DNA of 52,078 bases, counting the filler, from Bipalium vagum (lineage: Eukaryota), in NCBI GenBank assembly GCA_037834085.1. It is 3 parts of 3 records of this genome, joined end to end, with 100 filler letters (N's around TTAATTAATTAA, not from the genome) between each part and the next. Parts side by side here need not be neighbours in the genome. Positions count along the whole stretch, not along the records: positions 16,230 to 35,297 come from JBBMKC010011778.1; 2 more parts are not named here. One strand, given 5' to 3'. Positions 2,173-31,357 of the stretch are shown in pieces (the stretch's first letter is position 1; each line of letters begins with the position of its first letter). Under the pieces are notes generated by a model. That model was not told where the DNA came from and did no database searches. It was given only the letters and a program-made list of their open reading frames with translations. Made by a program: the position numbers and the translations under genes.

Positions 2173-2869
2173 TGATGTAAATTATTTTTAATAGAAACTT
2201 TTCTTTAACTTTCTCAATATCTCTGTTGGAGATATCCTTGTACACCTTATGATCTTGATTAGTATTTTTTATTTCAATATTTCCGGTTACAAAAAAATTA
2301 ACAGATTAGTTTTATTTTAACATAATTCATAAAATTTTAATAAAACTAACGCGTTTTTGTTTATTAAAAATAATTTAAAGGTTTCTTAAGAAACAAACTT
2401 TTTCATCTAATTAAATTTCTGATTGACAAATGTGGAATAAAATCTGGAACTGGTGTACTTAAAAAATAAATAAACAAATTTTTTTCTTAATCTTGTTTAA
2501 TATCAACGAAGACATATGCATATCCATCCATTCATGCAAAAATCTTACAAGCACTCTCTTACAATGTCTCTCTCTCCTTAAAGAATGTTTTATATTATTT
2601 TGATCATTAATTTGGAAAATTAAAATAGTGGTTAATGTATTATTTTTAACTACGCTCAACTTATTATAATAAAAATCAATTGTAAAGGTTTTCTTTCTAT
2701 GGTATCAAATAATTAATAATATTATACGTATGGTAATTAGCTCTAATCGTGTATTTTTCATTGTAAATAAAACTAAAAAGTACTCGTAATATTGTAATAT
2801 ATATGTAAGATATCAATAGTTAGTACTTGTTTTAACTGATAAAATATCCTATTTATTTTTAGAAAATAT

Positions 2870-3907
2870 AAAATCATAGACTAGAAAAAACCATTTGCAG
2901 GAATCATTATGATTTGGCTAAAAATTAAAGAAATCAGCAGTCAAAGCTTAGTGATTAATGACAAAATTTACGGTGAATATATCCTGTCTGAACTAACATG
3001 GCGAGAATGGTATCGACGATTTGAAACAGATGACTTTGGAGTCGAAGACAAAGAAACTTCAGGACAACCAAAAACGTTCGAAGATGATGATTTACGATGA
3101 AATATCAAAGAAGACCCATGCTAAACTGAATTAAATATTGACAGATCAACTGCTAGTTAACAGATGTATGCAGTTGGAATGATCCAAAAGTATGGAAAAT
3201 GGGTACCATATTATTTGACCGAAAGGTAGCTTGAAAATCGCAAAACTATTTGCAAAATTTTACTTACAAGGCATTCATTTTTGCATTAAAATATAACTGG
3301 TATTGGAAAATGGGTGTGGTAAAGAATCTCATGCGCAGAAAATCATGGACAATTCCTGGAGAATCATTGACAGTACAAAGATGGACAAACAGAAGTTAAG
3401 CGACACTATGTGTCTGATGGGACAAAATCGGAGTATTGTAACATGAGCTTCTAAAACCATCCGAAAATATAACTGGTGATCGATAACAGTCGATTTAAGT
3501 ACCAAAAGACCATAATATGACCTAAGATATGATCAAATCATTTTGCAACACGATAATACCAGATCATATCTTCCAAAACCAGTTAAAGAAACATAAAACA
3601 GACTTGGCTACCTCAACTCCGTAATAACAAGATACAGCGCCATACCAATTCCACTTGTTTTGATCCATGCAGTATTCTCTTGCTTGACAGGCCTTCAATT
3701 CCTATGAAGATGTCAATAAATGGATGGAACAATAGACTGCGTTAAAGGATCAAGATTTCTTTTATCGCGGAATCCATTTTTTGCCGGAAAGGTGGTTAAA
3801 CGTTGTAGCTGCCAAAGGAGAATATTTTGATTGAGATAAATGTTTTGTTACTTTAAAATAAACGGCTTTATTTTCAAAAAACGATGGGAATTAATTCCCA
3901 TACCTGT
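2870..3907 (+). mobile_element. Degenerate Mos1-like DD34D mariner
   Basis: REWYRRFETDDFGVEDKETSGQPKTFEDDDL, GKWVPYYL, ILQHDNTRS and LPERWLNVVAAKGEYFD across stops and frameshifts; TIR-like gggaattaattcccatacctg at the right end. Confidence 0.85.
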
Positions 3908-20105: not shown

Positions 20106-20160
20106 CCTAAAATAATAATAATAATAATAAATATCAAACAGAAAAATAATTAGCACTCAC

Positions 20161-21270
20161 GTCCTTTTCCACAAAACAATAATACAATGGTTCCATTGAT
20201 TTCGCTGGCACTGGAAGACTGAGGCACAAATGTGGTTCCAGTTTATATTGACGCGTGTTACAGCCCGGACAAGTGATGGTCAACTGTTGGTAAGTGGCAA
20301 ACAATTGGTGAATCTTTGAACAGTTCTGGTACGATATTTTCTGAGCTTCATAAGAGATATTGTACTTGCGATCTCTGTGGTTCATTTTGTTATCGATTAG
20401 TTCGTAAGGCAACTTCAACGTCTCATGACAATAATTCAAGAGGAACAATAAAAACTCTTGGGCATCTTGCTGATCGTTGCTATAGAAATTTTTATCGACC
20501 ACTGATAATTTGGCCTTAAAATCACTAGAAATCGATTCGCACTTCAAATTGGGCATCCACAGGCTTTTGAGAAACAGGGCGAAACTGAACAGAAATGAGG
20601 TTGTTTCTTTCCATTTGAGATTAGAATCGGAACTTTGAAATTTATTCAGACGACTAAGGTCGTCCTTGAACTTATTCAAAACGAAATATTTAGCCAGAGA
20701 ATCGATGGAGTTGATGCATTGCAAAATGGAATTTATATAACACGTGTTTCCGTGGTTTACGATTCCGTAATATGAGATGCTGTGGTTTTGAGCGAACTTG
20801 TTGTTATTTTTTGGTGTTTGGGTTGAATTCAATTTTGAATCGAACTCTGCGTTTGTCAAGCTGGAAAAACGACTTGATGTGCTCAAATTACCAGTTTCTC
20901 GACAATCGTTGGTGTTTAAGTCCAGTGTCAGTGATATACTCATGGATTTGTACTTTCTCGAAGTAAACATTCGATATAATGATAATTTGTTTGATTTCAA
21001 TGACTTTACTGGTGCCTTGGAGCTCAATATTTCATTGGAACACTTTAAGGATGCTCTGGTTTTGTTCGAAGGAGACTGGCTTTGATCAAAAGATTTGGCT
21101 TTAACAAAATAAGTACGGAGTTTTGAAAAAATATTTACATTTCTCTCAAATAATTTTGATTTTTTATTTTTCTTCGCTTGAATAATGAAATCATCTGAAT
21201 TTTCTTGATTTTTAATATAAGATTTTTTGTCAGACAAACTGTTTCTTGACCAAAATCGATTACCAAACAT
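20161..21270 (-). CDS. USP31: USP31/USP43-like ubiquitin carboxyl-terminal hydrolase (C19), coding exon 1
   Basis: Cys box GIVNHGNTCYINSILQC (GxxNHGNTC is typical of USP31/43), QQDAQEFLLFLL, TCPGC, EPHLCLSLPVP..PLY; donor GAC|gtgagt at 20160. K/S-rich N-terminal extension. Confidence 0.85.
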
Positions 21271-22099
21271 TGATGAATCAACATAGAATGTGGATTGCTT
21301 TAAATAAAATATTGTTCATTCTAAAATGATTCGTTGAAATTACATATATTCATTTTTTAAATTATTTTCTAAAACATGTTATTTAATAAAATTACTGTAC
21401 AATCTTCAATTTAAATTTGAAATAGCAACATTTTTATATTTACAAATTTCCCAACTAACGTAATTCACATTTTTAAACAAAACAAATTCAAGGTCAATCT
21501 ATATATTTTTTTCGTGCTTCGAAAATCAATTTCAAAATAAAAAAAAATAATGAACACAATTGTATTAAATTCGAAGTTTAAAATGAGTGTTTTAATTTAT
21601 CAACCAATTCTAAGGATAAGTTACTTTCAATTTGTCACCTGCCTAGTACTAGACATCATTTTGGTTCTTTTTATGTAATGAAAAAGCAACTCCCTACATG
21701 TCTTAACGGTTCAGGTAACTTAAAGCTGATCACTCAGATTAAGTCCAGATTTTTCCAAAAGGATTCTACATGATTCTTTAACTAATAATCTCTTCAGCTA
21801 CCATTATCTACAATCATCAAAAACTTGATAATCCTACAAAAGTTGCTTATATATGTTAATAATAAATAACATAGTTATTAAAGGAATTATGTTATTCTTA
21901 AATCATTGTACGTTTTTTGTATCCTTATGAACTCTCATCTGTTAAATTTTTTATATATATGAATCCAAAATCTTTTATTATGGATAGGATTTATTTAACC
22001 CTATGGATGAAATAAAATGACGAATGATAGCATTAAATTTGATTAATTAAAACAGAAAACATCTAAAAGTTCAGTTCTAAATCACAAACCGTTTAAAAA

Positions 22100-23850
22100 A
22101 ATAATAGTTAACGTCTCTGAATCTCACCCACAGCGATTGCATTGGTTTCCTCTGTCTTTCCGCGCTACTCATCTGGCTAATGTATCTAGTCTTCGGATTT
22201 TCAACTTTTGCCTGCTCATGTTTTGTCTGACACTGAGCACATACGATATCGGTGATTCTGGACAATCCATTGACATTGCTGTGCTCTTCGCCTTTCCGGT
22301 ATCTCAAATCAAAGTTGAATTCAGACAGATTTGTCAGCCAGGTTTGAAACTATGGGCTGATTGGATTTTTGTAGTGTTCAGGAATACTAGAGCTTTGTGA
22401 TCCGTTCTTGCAATGAATCCTTCGCGATATATGTATTGCTTGAAGTTCAAAACGAATTCGTACAGATCTAATAACTTCTTCCTTGTGATGCAATAGCCAA
22501 ATTCGTGATTCGCAAATGCCTGGAACAATAAATAATCACGGTCCTCGATCCATCTTCTTTGATCTGGCTTAACACGGCACCGATAGCCCTGAAACTAGCG
22601 TCAGTATCCAACATGAAAGTAGAGTCCTTTCACGGGAAATTAAAAATGGGGGCTTTTGCATAGTCTGTCCTTGAGATTTTGGAACCGTTAACTGCAGACC
22701 TTTGTCTTCTCTTGAAATAACCGCATATAAGGAAGCTGCAACTTCGGCATACATATTGATGATAATAGTTTGTCAATCCTAGGAAAGACAGCAAATGCGA
22801 CACACAACCAAGTGGTTTTGCCCTAGATATTTCCTCTATCTTCTTTTCTTTGGTGCGAATGTCATCCGAATACACGGTATGACCAAGAAAAACAAGCTCT
22901 TTCTGAAGGTACTGGCACTTGTTGGGATTTAATTTCAAGCCTACCTTTGAGATTATGTAAACGAGATATATTATGTAATCATGATATACCAGAACACCAT
23001 AAAAAAATTAGACCATCCAACAGTTCGTGCATCAGATTTTGAAACGTCTCCAGATCCGTTGACAACTCAAAAGGCATGCAATTGACGTAGAATTTACCTT
23101 GTACGGTGCTGAACGCCGTTATCAATCGCGACTTTTCTGATTGATCCAGATCGATTGAGGAAAAATATTTTGACCCAGCCAGGAAATCGAGTAACATCTG
23201 CATATCAGGAATGGGAAAAGTATACTTCTCTATAATGGCATTGACTCTCATAAAATCTACGCACATTCGAATCGAGCCGTCTTTTTTCCTCACTACCATC
23301 ATTGGGGAATTCTATGGGCTCTTGTACTTGGACACGACTCCAGCGGCCATCAGTTGGAATACCATCACATCCACCATTGATTTCAGATGCATCGGCTGCC
23401 TTCTTGGTTGTTGTAAGATTGTTGTGCCTGTTACGTCAATGTTATATTGAACTAACTTCGTTGCCAATTGTCAAAGGTTGAACCCATGAAAATATTACCA
23501 TGCCCTCTCATCATGTTATGCAATCGCACACTGCTCACTTCTTTAAAAATCTCCATTACATAATTAATTCTGTCGAAACTTGAAAACTTCTTTTGTAGAT
23601 CTGTCTATTCAATGTATTAATTATTATTATTATTAATTTGGATGAACTGGATTCCAAACTCATTCATCAAATTAACGCTACCAAGAAAATCTGGCTGCAA
23701 TATCCGTACGACCATAATCTCCACTTGTTTAGTTTTCCCACTCCAACCGATATCTGACAATGGTCGCTCGCATCCAACTGAAAATACACAAATTAAGATA
23801 GCTTTGCTATTACTCAACTTAGGCTACTCAGCTATCTGTCCTTTTTTCCG
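22100..23850 (-). mobile_element. Ty3/gypsy pol relic (protease-RT-RNase H; integrase not seen)
   Basis: VVRKKDGSIRMCVDF, FPIPDM, YFSSIDL, MPFELS, KLNPNKCQYLQKELVFLGH, SFLGLTNYY, LDTDAS, TDHKAL, YRKGEEHSNVNGLSR across frameshifts. Confidence 0.92.
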
Positions 23851-26320: not shown

Positions 26321-28072
26321 AATATAAATTACTATTTCAAAAGTAATCTTCGGATAATAGCGGGTTCTCTTCTGACAGCTCTTGATCCTTCTGACAATAG
26401 TGTTAAGTTTTGTGAGAGTTTGTACAACTTATCTTAATCTGACTCCTTAAGGTAGTGTACCGATCACAAATAAGGCAAACAAAACGATTTTTAACTTTTA
26501 TTTTTAATACACTTTTTACAACTTTTTAAAAGGTTTATCTTTTACTAAAATCAAAATGACAATATATTTTTAATTAAAGAAGATACTCAATCTACACCAG
26601 GAAATGTGTAGATGCCCTGAAGTAAAATAAGGAATCTGATAACTAGTTTAACAGATCGTAATTGCTAGAATAAAACACAAAAAGAAGAATCCGGAAATTT
26701 AAATTGAACAAAAACTAAAACGTGAAATTATATTCGCGTTCTGTAAAGTTAATTTATTTATTAAAGTGAATATAATAATTCACTTACACTTTAATTAGTA
26801 TACTTTTTCCTGTCCAAAATGAGTTATGATAAACTCTATATATAGTTATAATAAACTATTATTAGCTTTCAATTTTTATTTCATAGTTATAATAAACTAA
26901 GAATTTTTATGATTTTTCTTTGGGTATTTATACTAATTTTTATTATGTGTGCCAGCATTCCTACAATTATCATTGGTTTATTTCCAAATCACTCCGGCGC
27001 TCACGCCCCAGTCAATTTTCATCACTACTTATTTCATCCATCCATCTCCGATCCCGATTTTACCCAAGTATTATTTTTATTTTGTTTTATTTTTTTTTAA
27101 TTTATTTTAATTTATTATTATCATTTAATTTATTATTATTAAGTTTCAGACCTCACACGCTGCTCCGACCCCGCAGCCATTTTGATCCTGCTACACAGCC
27201 TTGTGGACATGTTTTTAGGTTAGATTATTTTATTCTTTTATATTATTATTTACTTTATTATTATAATATATTGTCGGTTGCTGTGTCATTTATCAGTTTT
27301 GATAATTTTTAAAACTCTATATGGGTCTGTCTATCAAATTTACTTTTTATTGATTTATTGATAGTGAAATCCATACTTAAAAATTTGAAGTTCCAAAAAT
27401 ATTGAAAAGAGAAATTATTATTGTTATCGATTAGTTTTTATTACCACTGTTCATCATTGTCCTTCACCATTATTAATCTATATTATTTTGTTTATTTAAA
27501 AAAAAATAATTAAATTGAATCACTAATACAATATTTAATGACAAATATTTAATATTTAAATATTTAAATTTGAATTTTAAAGATTATCTTCATTTTTGCC
27601 AATTCTAAAAATTTTAAGTTTGTAAGCCTTTTATTATTATTCGGATATGGGGTTAAGTAAAATCTTATTATTTAAACGGTGATTTTAAATTAAAAATTAA
27701 CAATCACCTTAAAAGTGAAAAATATTTTTAGTAACTGTCTTAGTTTTTTAAATTTATTAATTTTAATTGAAAATTTAATCTTTTACCCTAAAAATAATAT
27801 ACTTATGCGTTGTTCTGGACGAAATAAAAATTTATTTTTAATTCAAATCAATAACCTATACGAGATTAAATAGCTAACAATTCAAGCCACATGTAAAATC
27901 AATCACAATTACTAAAATATTTAGAAATTAAAATTAAAAACTAAATAAATCTATTTTAACACATTTTGAATAAAATTTTTAATAAACTTAAAAATTAAAT
28001 TTCAAAAATCCACAAATAATCAATTTTCACTTTTTATTAAAACTAATAAATACAATTTTGTTAAGTGATGCA

Positions 28073-29805
28073 CTAATTAGAATCAACATTGTCCTTAGCC
28101 ACTTCCGATCTTTCAACACCGGCGGAACCTTCTCGGTCACTGCAAGCCGATTTTACAGATTCTCGATCACAAGAGGAAGCTGATCTGCTTTTGGTATTTG
28201 ATCGACTAACGGAAACACTACGATTACGTTCCTTGGACCTGTAATTCGTAGACTCCTTTTTTTCAACTGATCGTGAACGAGACATTGACCGACTCACCGA
28301 TTTGGACTTTTCATCGTCTTCGCCAACCCATTTCTGAGAAAATTGAAAAATTAAAATTATCAACAAAAAAAATAATCCAATATTTTTAAAAATTAACCTA
28401 ATATCAATTTATATTCGACAATTCTAAAAATTTACCTGAGCGGGACTTTTGGATTTTGAGAACGACTTCGCACCACTTCTCGATTTTTTGCTAGTAGATC
28501 GCTTGCGACTAGAAGAACGTCTTCGACTGCGGGATCTTCGCTTGCTTGATTTACTTCGGGATCGACTTCTCGACTTGGAACGACTGCTGCTTCGTCTCCT
28601 GGAAGACCGGGATCGACTTCTTGACTTTCTCTTGGAACCACCACCTCGATCTTCGTAGACTTTCAATTTGTAACCATAAAGTTCGTAGCCATCGTACTTT
28701 TCTATTGCTGCTCTCATATCTGAACTATTGGAAAATTCGACCACTCTTGATTTTTATTAAAAACTGATAGCTATTGAAATCTTTAAAATTACCCCTGATT
28801 TGGTCTCAATTTGTGAGCATCTGCGAAAGTTACTTCACCAACCTTTCGCATCAGATCTTTCAAGTCCTGAACAACAAATAAAAGATAAAATTGGCAGCGA
28901 AGTTCCCCAGTGCTCTCTCTCTGTCTCAGTTTCAATTTAGCCAATCTTTAAAAGTCCACACACAAGCGAGACCATTAGAGAGAGCGTCAGTTAAGTAATG
29001 GATACATCTGGACGCAAATAAAGCTAATCTTTAGGCGACTGAAATCTTACTGGATCCCAAGTTCATCCCAAAATCCAGGTTCACTCTAAGGATCACATCA
29101 ATGGGCGCCCTCCACTTTTACAAACAAGGCAATAACAACACCACATCACATCACATTTAAGCTTCAACAGGTGTGCCACCCACTAATTATCAGACTGAGA
29201 TGATGCGACCACAGATTTGATGCTAATTTAGAAAATTTGTTTACAAAATTATTATTTCGTAGTATACATTTTTATTTATTTAAAAATTGATATTAATTTC
29301 GATGTCTTAACTGAACCCTATGTTTTATTGACATGACAAAAAAATTTTTACAGAAAACTTCACTCACTTGCCAGCTCACTCTTGACGATAAGTCGTCTAC
29401 AATGATTCTGTGTTCTGATCGAATAGGCTTTCTGGAGTTATATCTAAAACCAGAAATCAGAAAATTATTAGGAACCTAAAAAAATTACCTATCGCGTGAT
29501 TCTCTGTTGTCATAACGATTATTTCGATAATCTTGGCCTCTAAACCCACGATCCCCTCCGCTACCTCTGTCACCACCAAATCGTGCATTGGATCTTGCCA
29601 TTTCAACGGTCACCCGTTCTCCCAGTAATTTAGATCCATCCAAATCATGGATTGCGTCTTCAGCATCACGGCGATCATCGATTTCAATGAAGCCATATCC
29701 GCTTTTCAAATCAACACTTCGTATACGTCCATATTCGCGGAAGAATTTCTTAATATCTCGTTCTTCAACCCTTCGCGGTAAATTTCCGATATATAAACGT
29801 GGCAT
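28073..29805 (-). CDS. SRSF4/5/6: SRSF4/5/6-family (B52/SRp55) SR splicing factor, 345 aa; exons 29805-29489, 29443-29368, 28866-28793, 28745-28436, 28333-28073
   Basis: RRM1 [24 protein letters not shown]; pseudo-RRM [14 protein letters not shown]^[19 protein letters not shown]^VVEFS; long RS domain. All four introns (45, 501, 47, 102 nt) are GT-AG and the exons sum to 1038 nt in frame. Confidence 0.96.
29051..29222 (-). promoter_or_regulatory. Candidate poison exon / alternative 3' splice-site extension of the SR gene
   Basis: Acceptor ttttctaaattag|CAT at 29223/29222; in-frame [10 protein letters not shown] then TGA TAA; candidate donor CCA|gtaaga at 29050; GC content steps up at the acceptor. 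Confidence 0.7.
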
Positions 29806-29852
29806 CTGGCTTTCAAAGATTAAAGTTAAATCATTATTAAAAAAATGTCTAC
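29806..29852 (-). other. Probable 47-nt 5'-UTR intron of the SR gene
   Basis: AAG|gtagac...gaaagccag|ATG; same length class as the 45- and 47-nt coding introns. Confidence 0.55.
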
Positions 29853-30448
29853 CTTAAAATGGCTGCTTTCAATGAATTGGTTTCACTAAATATAAACAAA
29901 TTTCATTCCACATCATTAATGAAAATTTATTTTCCTTTAAAAATAAGAATCTTATTTAATTATTAATTTCATATTTTTAGTTATAATTTTTAAGATTAAA
30001 GTTTAAATAAGTTTTTATTTTAAGTATATTTCAAGATTAAATAGATTTCTAAATCGTATTAGATAACTTCAAAAGTATAAATGAAGTACAAAAAGTATTT
30101 AATTGTTGAAACTTATTAAATAACATTGAAAATTATACTTTTCAATATATTAATTTAATTAAATTGGTATTAATTAATCTTTAATTAAGTAACTACGGCA
30201 GATGAAATAAATAAAAATTCAAGATAATGTTAGGATAGCATCAATTATTCTAATTATCAAATAATTCCACGATAAGTCATTCTTCAGATTTCAAAAAATA
30301 TCGTTATAAAAAACTTAATTTATAATAATCATGGGTTTATAACTAATAATCAATATATAGAGTTTTATTTTTTATATAAATGTTCTGATTTTAAAAGTTA
30401 ATTTTAAAGATTACACTTTTCAATTTTATAAGTTTGGATTTTTATATA

Positions 30449-31357
30449 TGTTACGCTATTATTTCACTATGAACACTGTCGTAACACTTAGCTTGCAAAG
30501 TTTACTGACCCCTTCACTTTTGCTTATACTTGTACGCAAATAAATGAATCAAACAACTACGAACAACACTATTGCTAAAAAACAATAACAAAATGTTTCA
30601 AATGATCAAGAAAATGTCTTCAATCAATCACACTGAAAATCAACGACAATAATAATCAATTAAATTAAAATCAGATAATTAAATCTCAATATCAATTAAA
30701 AGTCAGTAAGAATTAATTTAAAAAGTAAAAAAACAAAATCAAGATATTCTCATCACTTGTGACGACAGGTCCAACTGGTGGTTTGCTCAGCCCAATCTGG
30801 TCCGCTCAGAAACCCCCTAACAGCACAGAACCCGCCGTGAGATCCTGTCGCATAGAGGGCATAAAGAATGACGAAAAACCTTTTGATGAATATCTCGAAT
30901 ATTTCGTAGTCGAATGTCTCGTGGTCAAGTATCTCGTATCCTTTTTCTGACGAAAATCTTAGATGTCTCGTAGTTGAAACCTCGTGGTCACGAAAATTTC
31001 TTTCGGAGAATTTTATGGCAATCCACTGCGGCTTCAGTATCCTTATATACTATTCTGATCAGACGATCAATCAATCGTAGACCAGATTTATCAATGGGGA
31101 ATGTCAATTCCCTTTTTAGCTTGTTAATTCTAAATCGTTCCCTCCTTGAGGACCCTGATCTAATCTTGACAATTTAGGTTCGCCATTGTCAAGATTAGAT
31201 CCCTTTTGGAAATAATTAATTGCTCTCTTTTTGTTTGAATGTAATTTTTAATTAATTAATTAATTATTATTATTATTATTATTTTATTTCTGACCCTTTT
31301 GCGGTCTTAATAATTAATTGATAATAACCAATCTAAACCCTATTATGGTCTCTAACA
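30449..31357 (-). mobile_element. Solo LTR (909 bp), copy 2
   Basis: TGTTA...TAACA inverted ends; TATA/TATG flanks (4-bp TSD with 1 mismatch); TATATAA on the minus strand at 31049-31043; shares ~420 bp with 25891-26320. Confidence 0.75.

Follow-up and report, generated by a model that had tools for sequence, protein, structure and literature searches.

The locus described here raises the question of whether an unusually long intron in a splicing-factor gene of Bipalium vagum holds a switch by which the gene's transcripts could be diverted into nonsense-mediated decay (NMD). The gene encodes an SR protein of the SRSF5/B52 type with two RNA recognition motifs (RRMs) and is complete on the minus strand of the part derived from record JBBMKC010011778.1, where it was read in positions 28000 to 30600 of the window (the whole analyzed stretch of 52,078 nucleotides, from assembly GCA_037834085.1). 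A first-pass annotation had proposed an autoregulatory poison exon in the intron that separates the SWQ and DLKD codons of the second RRM. On the evidence assembled below, we consider it fairly probable, with considerable room for doubt, that this 501-nt intron is a copy of the ancestral SRSF5/B52 intron-5 unproductive-splicing module.

The gene contains introns of, from 5′ to 3′, 47 (in the 5′ untranslated region [5′UTR]), 45, 501, 47, and 102 nt (Table 1), and the protein has a length of 345 residues, taken as the sum of the exon spans and not from a joined model. A canonical N-terminal RRM is present in exon 1 and is followed by a second, pseudo-RRM whose SWQDLKD heptapeptide is split across exons 2 and 3. 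Translation of the open reading frames (ORFs) of exons 4 and 5 gave runs of RS/SR dipeptides, constituting a C-terminal Arg/Ser-rich domain. The exons were searched separately, while the cDNA contig of a relative, L001, served as the full-length query.

L001 was found in a metagenome scan with the exon-1 peptide and is a polyadenylated, intron-free metatranscriptome contig of 1215 nt that encodes a 370-residue protein. It is 93% identical to coding exon 1 in protein, as is the product of a further relative, P0001, and 79% identical in DNA. The L001 alignment spans every proposed junction, including SWQ/DLKD, NQG/VVEF, and SP[AV]Q/KW; as judged from this alignment, L001 is a spliced mRNA from a close relative, and the productive junctions are all confirmed by it. 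The additional intron in the 5′UTR was deduced from the match between the start of L001 and the stretch from 29864 to 29853. The best named homologues of the full-length L001 protein were animal B52/SRSF5/4/6 proteins with 48 to 58% identity. Only two relatives, from metatranscriptomes or metagenomes, were closer than 58%, at 83% and 93%, and this search gave no match between 83% and 58% identity. These homologues, the RRM_1 matches of exons 1 and 4, and the contiguous SWQDLKD of L001 identify the gene as SRSF5/B52 type and place it, by sequence criteria, in the SRSF4/5/6 (B52, SRp40/55/75) subfamily.

Table 1. Features of the SR gene and of its 501-nt intron (positions in the window)
Feature	Position	Strand	Basis or remark
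Non-coding first exon, 3′ end	29853-29864	-	12 of 12 bases equal to the first bases of L001 cDNA, shortly ahead of its start-codon region
5′UTR intron, 47 nt, GTAGAC..GCCAG	29806-29852	-	Missing from L001 cDNA; GT..AG borders
Coding exon 1: ATG (29805), whole RRM1, Gly/Arg linker	29489-29805	-	Pfam RRM_1, E=1.1e-16
Intron 1, 45 nt	29444-29488	-	Exact gap in L001 cDNA alignment
Coding exon 2: pseudo-RRM start, ends ..SRVSWQ	29368-29443	-	Joined to DLKD in L001
SWQ-DLKD intron, 501 nt	28867-29367	-	Donor CAA/GTGAGT, acceptor ..GTTCAG/GAC, phase 0
AT-rich 5′ part of the 501-nt intron, 21% GC	29223-29367	-	Upstream intron if cassette used
Candidate poison cassette exon, 172 nt, 44% GC	29051-29222	-	AG 29224-29223, GTAAGA 29050-29045; single copy
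First in-frame stops, TGA TAA, on splicing to 29222	29187-29192	-	Translation
12-bp hairpin, 5-nt loop	29050-29078	-	-12.0 kcal/mol (local fold); also in whole-intron fold
Downstream part of the 501-nt intron, 40% GC, with inverted repeat and pyrimidine tract of the constitutive acceptor	28867-29050	-	Composition, local folds
Coding exon 3, DLKD..PNQG, starts DLKDLMRK	28793-28866	-	26 residues 100% identical to L001 protein
Intron 3, 47 nt, conserved NQG/VVEF position	28746-28792	-	Sequence reading, L001, orthologue mapping
Coding exon 4: RRM2 end and RS domain start	28436-28745	-	Pfam RRM_1, C-terminal part, E=7.5e-4
Intron 4, 102 nt	28334-28435	-	Sequence reading and L001 (SP[AV]Q/KW junction)
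Coding exon 5: remaining RS-rich tail, TAG 28075-28073	28073-28333	-	Sequence reading, translation, L001

The location of the 501-nt intron was compared with that of introns in orthologous genes. In goldfish srsf5a (L005), ..ISWQ closes the fourth coding exon and DLKD opens the next, and the intron between them, at 1131 nt, is the longest in the gene. The SWQ/DLKD intron is also the longest in B52 of the house dust mite (L003), with 1771 nt versus about 57 to 190 nt for the others, and extends over about 4.3 kb in the sea cucumber orthologue (L004). As the first exon of vertebrate SRSF5 is non-coding, the fourth coding exon is exon 5 and SWQ/DLKD is intron 5. By this mapping, the 501-nt intron sits at the position of SRSF5 intron 5. 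The B. vagum gene has kept the ancestral positions ../[RK]Y.. before the pseudo-RRM, SWQ/DLKD, and N[EQM]G/[VIN]V[ED]F, which are the same in mite, sea cucumber, and goldfish. RRM1 lies within one exon, unlike in these three orthologues, which have two RRM1 introns (after GFGFV or GFAFV and after GER); judged by this comparison, two ancestral RRM1 introns have been lost and the SWQ/DLKD intron has been kept.

Unproductive splicing of SRSF5 intron 5 was reported for essentially all animals by Lareau and Brenner in 2015, and the SRSF4/5/6 subfamily was described as descending from an SRSF5-like ancestor (PMC4379411). The earlier statement that SRSF5/B52 genes show unproductive splicing at the RRM2 intron is, thus, correct, both by that report and by the orthologue mapping. 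In fungi, the same intron is subject to NMD-sensitive retention, is unusually long for the genome, and resists shortening (PMC4379411). A Neurospora reverse primer from the same paper crosses the next downstream junction, and its reverse complement reads GEGFVEF; the retained fungal intron is, therefore, also at SWQ/DLKD.

The length and composition of the 501-nt intron set it apart. With the introns of the SR gene as the only baseline, it is about 5 to 10 times as long as the others, and the lengths given in the first-pass annotation (501 nt versus 45, 47, and 102 nt for the other coding introns) were exact. Recounting reproduced the GC values of 24/120 at positions 29221 to 29340 and 126/300 at positions 28921 to 29220. 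The step between the two parts is sharp, with 100-nt windows moving from 19% to 44 to 46% GC, and the non-coding DNA of the genome, including the intergenic DNA of this piece, has a GC content of 11 to 20%. Both the length excess and the sharp GC step exceed chance. A similar but milder pattern was observed in the mite intron (L003, 2222 to 3992), where a middle portion of 39 to 43% GC (about 2400 to 3250) is flanked by portions of 27 to 34%.

Potential splice sites within the intron were then considered together with the reading frames that they would generate. The internal AG and the GTAAGA claimed in the first pass were both present. The donor, CCA/GTAAGA at 29051/29050, is the only one of consensus quality in the 501-nt intron and equals the four real donors of the gene in this respect. 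Splicing from SWQ to the acceptor at 29223/29222 would produce the 172-nt candidate exon and a frameshift, with ten codons preceding TGA TAA, as had been claimed, and hence a stop at codon 11. A second candidate acceptor, at 29195/29194, offers a better pyrimidine tract, with a branch-like TTCTAAAT lying some 33 nt upstream; its use would produce a 144-nt candidate exon with TAG (29185-29183) at codon 4, and from these features it appears at least as plausible as the first. Full retention gives 24 codons and then a stop at codon 25, again in agreement with the earlier reading. Every inclusion route leads to an early in-frame stop, and the GC-rich block has stops in each of the three frames. 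Any non-coding DNA would be expected to contain such stops, and the numbers of stops per frame in the block (10, 14, and 14) were not in excess over chance. Similarly, the AG/GT sites and the single GTAAG in 356 nt match chance for the composition of the block. The GGA motifs noted previously are present, but a test for GGA as a binding motif of the gene's own RRMs in the block of the candidate exon detected no enrichment (4 seen versus 3.5 expected; p = 0.49). The sequence UGAUGUG occurs three times in the block (p about 0.001, for a motif chosen after looking), with two of the copies forming a small tandem repeat. The exact borders of a cassette exon are uncertain, and the proposal that precisely the exon from 29222 to 29051 is used as a poison exon is possible but doubtful.

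The chance-level statistics for splice sites, stops, and GGA would also be expected if the block were an old, now unique insertion, such as a transposon fragment or foreign DNA, within a constitutively spliced intron; such a block would have no regulatory role and would not yet have decayed to the AT-rich equilibrium of the genome. Degraded ORFs of retroelement-like character that keep a GC content of 39 to 43% are present on the same piece at about 22.1 to 23.3 kb, as a broken row from 22080 to 23302 (minus strand). As these retroelement-like stretches also have a GC content of about 40%, GC richness alone is no proof of constraint or selection. One of the ORFs, 22979 to 23302 (minus strand), is by motif recognition presumably the reverse-transcriptase core of an LTR retrotransposon; Pfam searches (E up to 0.01) with separate pieces of 22080 to 23302 gave no match. 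A lack of regulatory function would likewise be in keeping with the absence of similarity below E=0.1 between the 501-nt intron and the same intron in mite, sea cucumber, and goldfish, although this dissimilarity is not decisive, since it is expected at cross-phylum distances.

Copy number was assessed at a likeness of at least 80% in 376 Mb of DNA contigs, from the one sequencing run in which the locus is present. A single contig of 2959 nt covers positions 27517 to 30475 with zero differences. Depth over the GC-rich block was flat at 18.9 (one contig), and AT-rich stretches drew extra contigs. Apparent skips in the contig alignment had sides of 21 to 26 letters in AT-rich repeats and were rejected as joints without meaning. 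No second copy of the block was detected at this likeness in the 376 Mb, and the block is, hence, single copy at that level and not the multicopy transposon that the first-pass annotation had named as grounds for abandoning its proposal. An insertion origin is further opposed by the contrast with a neighboring element at 30429 to 30500, which reaches a summed depth of 35577, and by the failure of the block to resemble, in DNA or in translation, the retroelement-like remnants, the rest of the 19-kb piece, or the gene's own exons. It would, moreover, be a coincidence for such an insertion to land in the intron that holds the poison exon of animals and that is the longest in mite and goldfish. 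A functionless insertion is, on balance, an unlikely explanation of the block, if one to be taken seriously.

The block might instead host another kind of element, such as a lineage-specific snoRNA or miRNA, an antisense transcript, an internal promoter or enhancer, or an intronic polyadenylation site yielding an RRM1-only protein. Hosted RNA genes can appear as GC-rich islands in AT-rich introns, and individual mRNAs whose poly(A) addition falls within the alternative exon of SRSF5 have been reported for frog and zebrafish (PMC4379411). An imperfect inverted repeat, which could belong to such an element, was observed at 28985 to 28912 (minus strand), 45 to 120 nt upstream of the constitutive acceptor; its arms consist of 9 bp (CUCUCUCU/AGAGAGAG) and 6 bp (GGUCUC/GAGAC), and the z score of its local fold is about -2. 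Against this, Rfam searches of both strands with E up to 1 found no family match for the block, no tRNA was detected in it, and no hairpin of the size or significance of a pre-miRNA was found in the intron, the best windows having z scores of about -2. A canonical C box is absent (UGAUGU being present, not UGAUGA), as is AATAAA from the GC-rich block. No ORF above 51 codons is present on either strand, which speaks against a nested coding gene. The uniqueness of the block, the lack of an Rfam match, and the lack of likeness to the piece or to the exons go against both a transposon and a known RNA gene, and a hosted element of any of these types is considered very unlikely.

Regulated unproductive splicing is the best explanation of the 501-nt intron because of its position, its outlier length, the exon-like and unique composition of the block, the good internal donor, and the published universality of such splicing. 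Under this explanation, SWQ would be joined directly to DLKD in most pre-mRNAs, resulting in the 345-residue SR protein. In a regulated fraction, a cassette from the GC-rich block would be included, with 29222 or 29194 as its most likely start and the GTAAGA donor at 29050 as its most likely end; alternatively, the 501-nt intron would be retained. By either path, translation would stop 4 to 25 codons past SWQ, with three exon junctions and over 1.2 kb still separating it from the normal end, and the stop-bearing mRNA would be removed by NMD. By analogy with known systems, the SR protein itself when abundant, or other SR proteins, would promote the unproductive path and so create a negative feedback. 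We infer from these features that the internal sites are used, that the product decays, and that feedback operates, and autoregulation of this particular gene would be purely such an inference. No truncated isoform was present in the protein cluster of the relatives or among the short matches to exon 1.

The closest known system is the poison cassette in intron 5 of SRSF5 (SRp40), with orthologues in fly B52, Caenorhabditis elegans rsp-1/rsp-2, sea urchin, lancelet, and anemone (PMC4379411, which cites Lareau et al. 2007). The B. vagum gene shares with it the subfamily, the phase 0 SWQ/DLKD position, a small DLKD..N[EQ]G exon immediately downstream, an intron that is a length outlier, and stops on inclusion or retention that lie far upstream of the normal stop. 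It differs in the size of the intron (501 nt versus 1.1 to 4.3 kb in mite, goldfish, and sea cucumber) and in that the cassette is here a candidate predicted from sequence. In comparison with the mite, sea cucumber, and goldfish orthologues, the host gene also lacks the RRM1 introns, and its SWQ/DLKD intron has no detectable similarity to theirs. The ultraconserved poison exon in intron 2 of vertebrate SRSF6/SRSF4 follows the same logic, alternative splicing coupled to NMD of an SR gene, but occupies another, vertebrate-specific intron position and is not homologous to the 501-nt intron (PMC4379411).

The fungal srp2 intron (Neurospora crassa and Aspergillus) occupies the same position, gives in-frame stops on retention, and is among the longest 1 to 3% in its genomes, a likeness to the outlier length found here; it has neither a cassette exon nor notable sequence conservation (PMC4379411). 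A purely fungal mode can be envisaged for B. vagum, in which unproductive transcripts arise by full retention of the intron, splicing ignores the internal AG and GT, and the GC-rich block does no more than slow splicing or bind repressors. Intron definition in genomes with short introns would make a 501-nt intron an inefficiently spliced outlier, the retained intron does run into a stop after 24 codons, and retention accompanies the cassette in many animals. Animals examined so far, however, use a cassette exon in SRSF5 intron 5 (PMC4379411), and the B. vagum intron, unlike that of srp2, contains an exon-like block that carries a GTAAGA donor of consensus quality and two usable acceptors. Retention as the sole unproductive outcome is, hence, quite improbable, and it modifies the main explanation more than it truly competes with it.

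The RNA fold of the whole intron was no better than that of shuffled sequences (z = -1.04). In the 12-bp hairpin (Table 1), the last base of the 3′ arm is the first G of GTAAGA, the candidate donor, and the 5′ arm contains AACCUGG, which is like the core of the fly B52 aptamer (PMC2685113, where the aptamer sequence is printed within a primer); this likeness, consisting of a single 7-mer picked post hoc, is a lead only. The hairpin might be imagined as a sensor that occludes the donor of the poison exon and is opened or closed by the gene's own SR protein, within a minimal 501-nt module in which the billion-year-old SRSF5 intron-5 switch would have survived in an unsampled animal lineage, where introns have shrunk to about 45 nt and the RRM1 introns of the gene have been lost. 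We regard this as a long shot, no likelier than a hosted element; if true, it would provide a compact and dissectable model for SR autoregulation.

If the unproductive-splicing module is real, the universality of the SRSF5 intron-5 mechanism would be extended to a lineage without an annotated genome in the collections searched. The module would have withstood strong pressure across the genome towards shorter and fewer introns, the same argument as that made for fungi. At 501 nt, it would be among the smallest animal examples and handy for minigene dissection. As the mechanism and the position have already been described, no new question is opened, and the switch is probably an ordinary further example of them.

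Several other observations were made on the piece and on the relatives. The element at 30429 to 30500, which may extend to about 30520, is of very high copy number, lies about 0.6 kb upstream of the SR gene, and is matched by many contigs that are 85 to 90% alike (the unique depth being 18.9). An ORF of 378 codons at 20137 to 21270 (minus strand) encodes a ubiquitin carboxyl-terminal hydrolase domain (Pfam UCH, E=1.8e-22). The closest relatives of this protein among 5.8 billion proteins are only 33 to 34% identical, indicating that the lineage is poorly sampled. Of the relatives of the SR gene, L001 was represented as cDNA and P0004 as protein, while P0001 came from a contig of 531 bp. The last is an ENA contig from sample ERZ27256860 and encodes 107 residues, one of which differs from the L001 protein. 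Because its product ends precisely where exon 1 does (..SRDR), the contig probably represents the L001 species, either as genomic DNA or as a transcript still unspliced, and assembly ERZ27256860 may hold the orthologous SWQ-DLKD intron.
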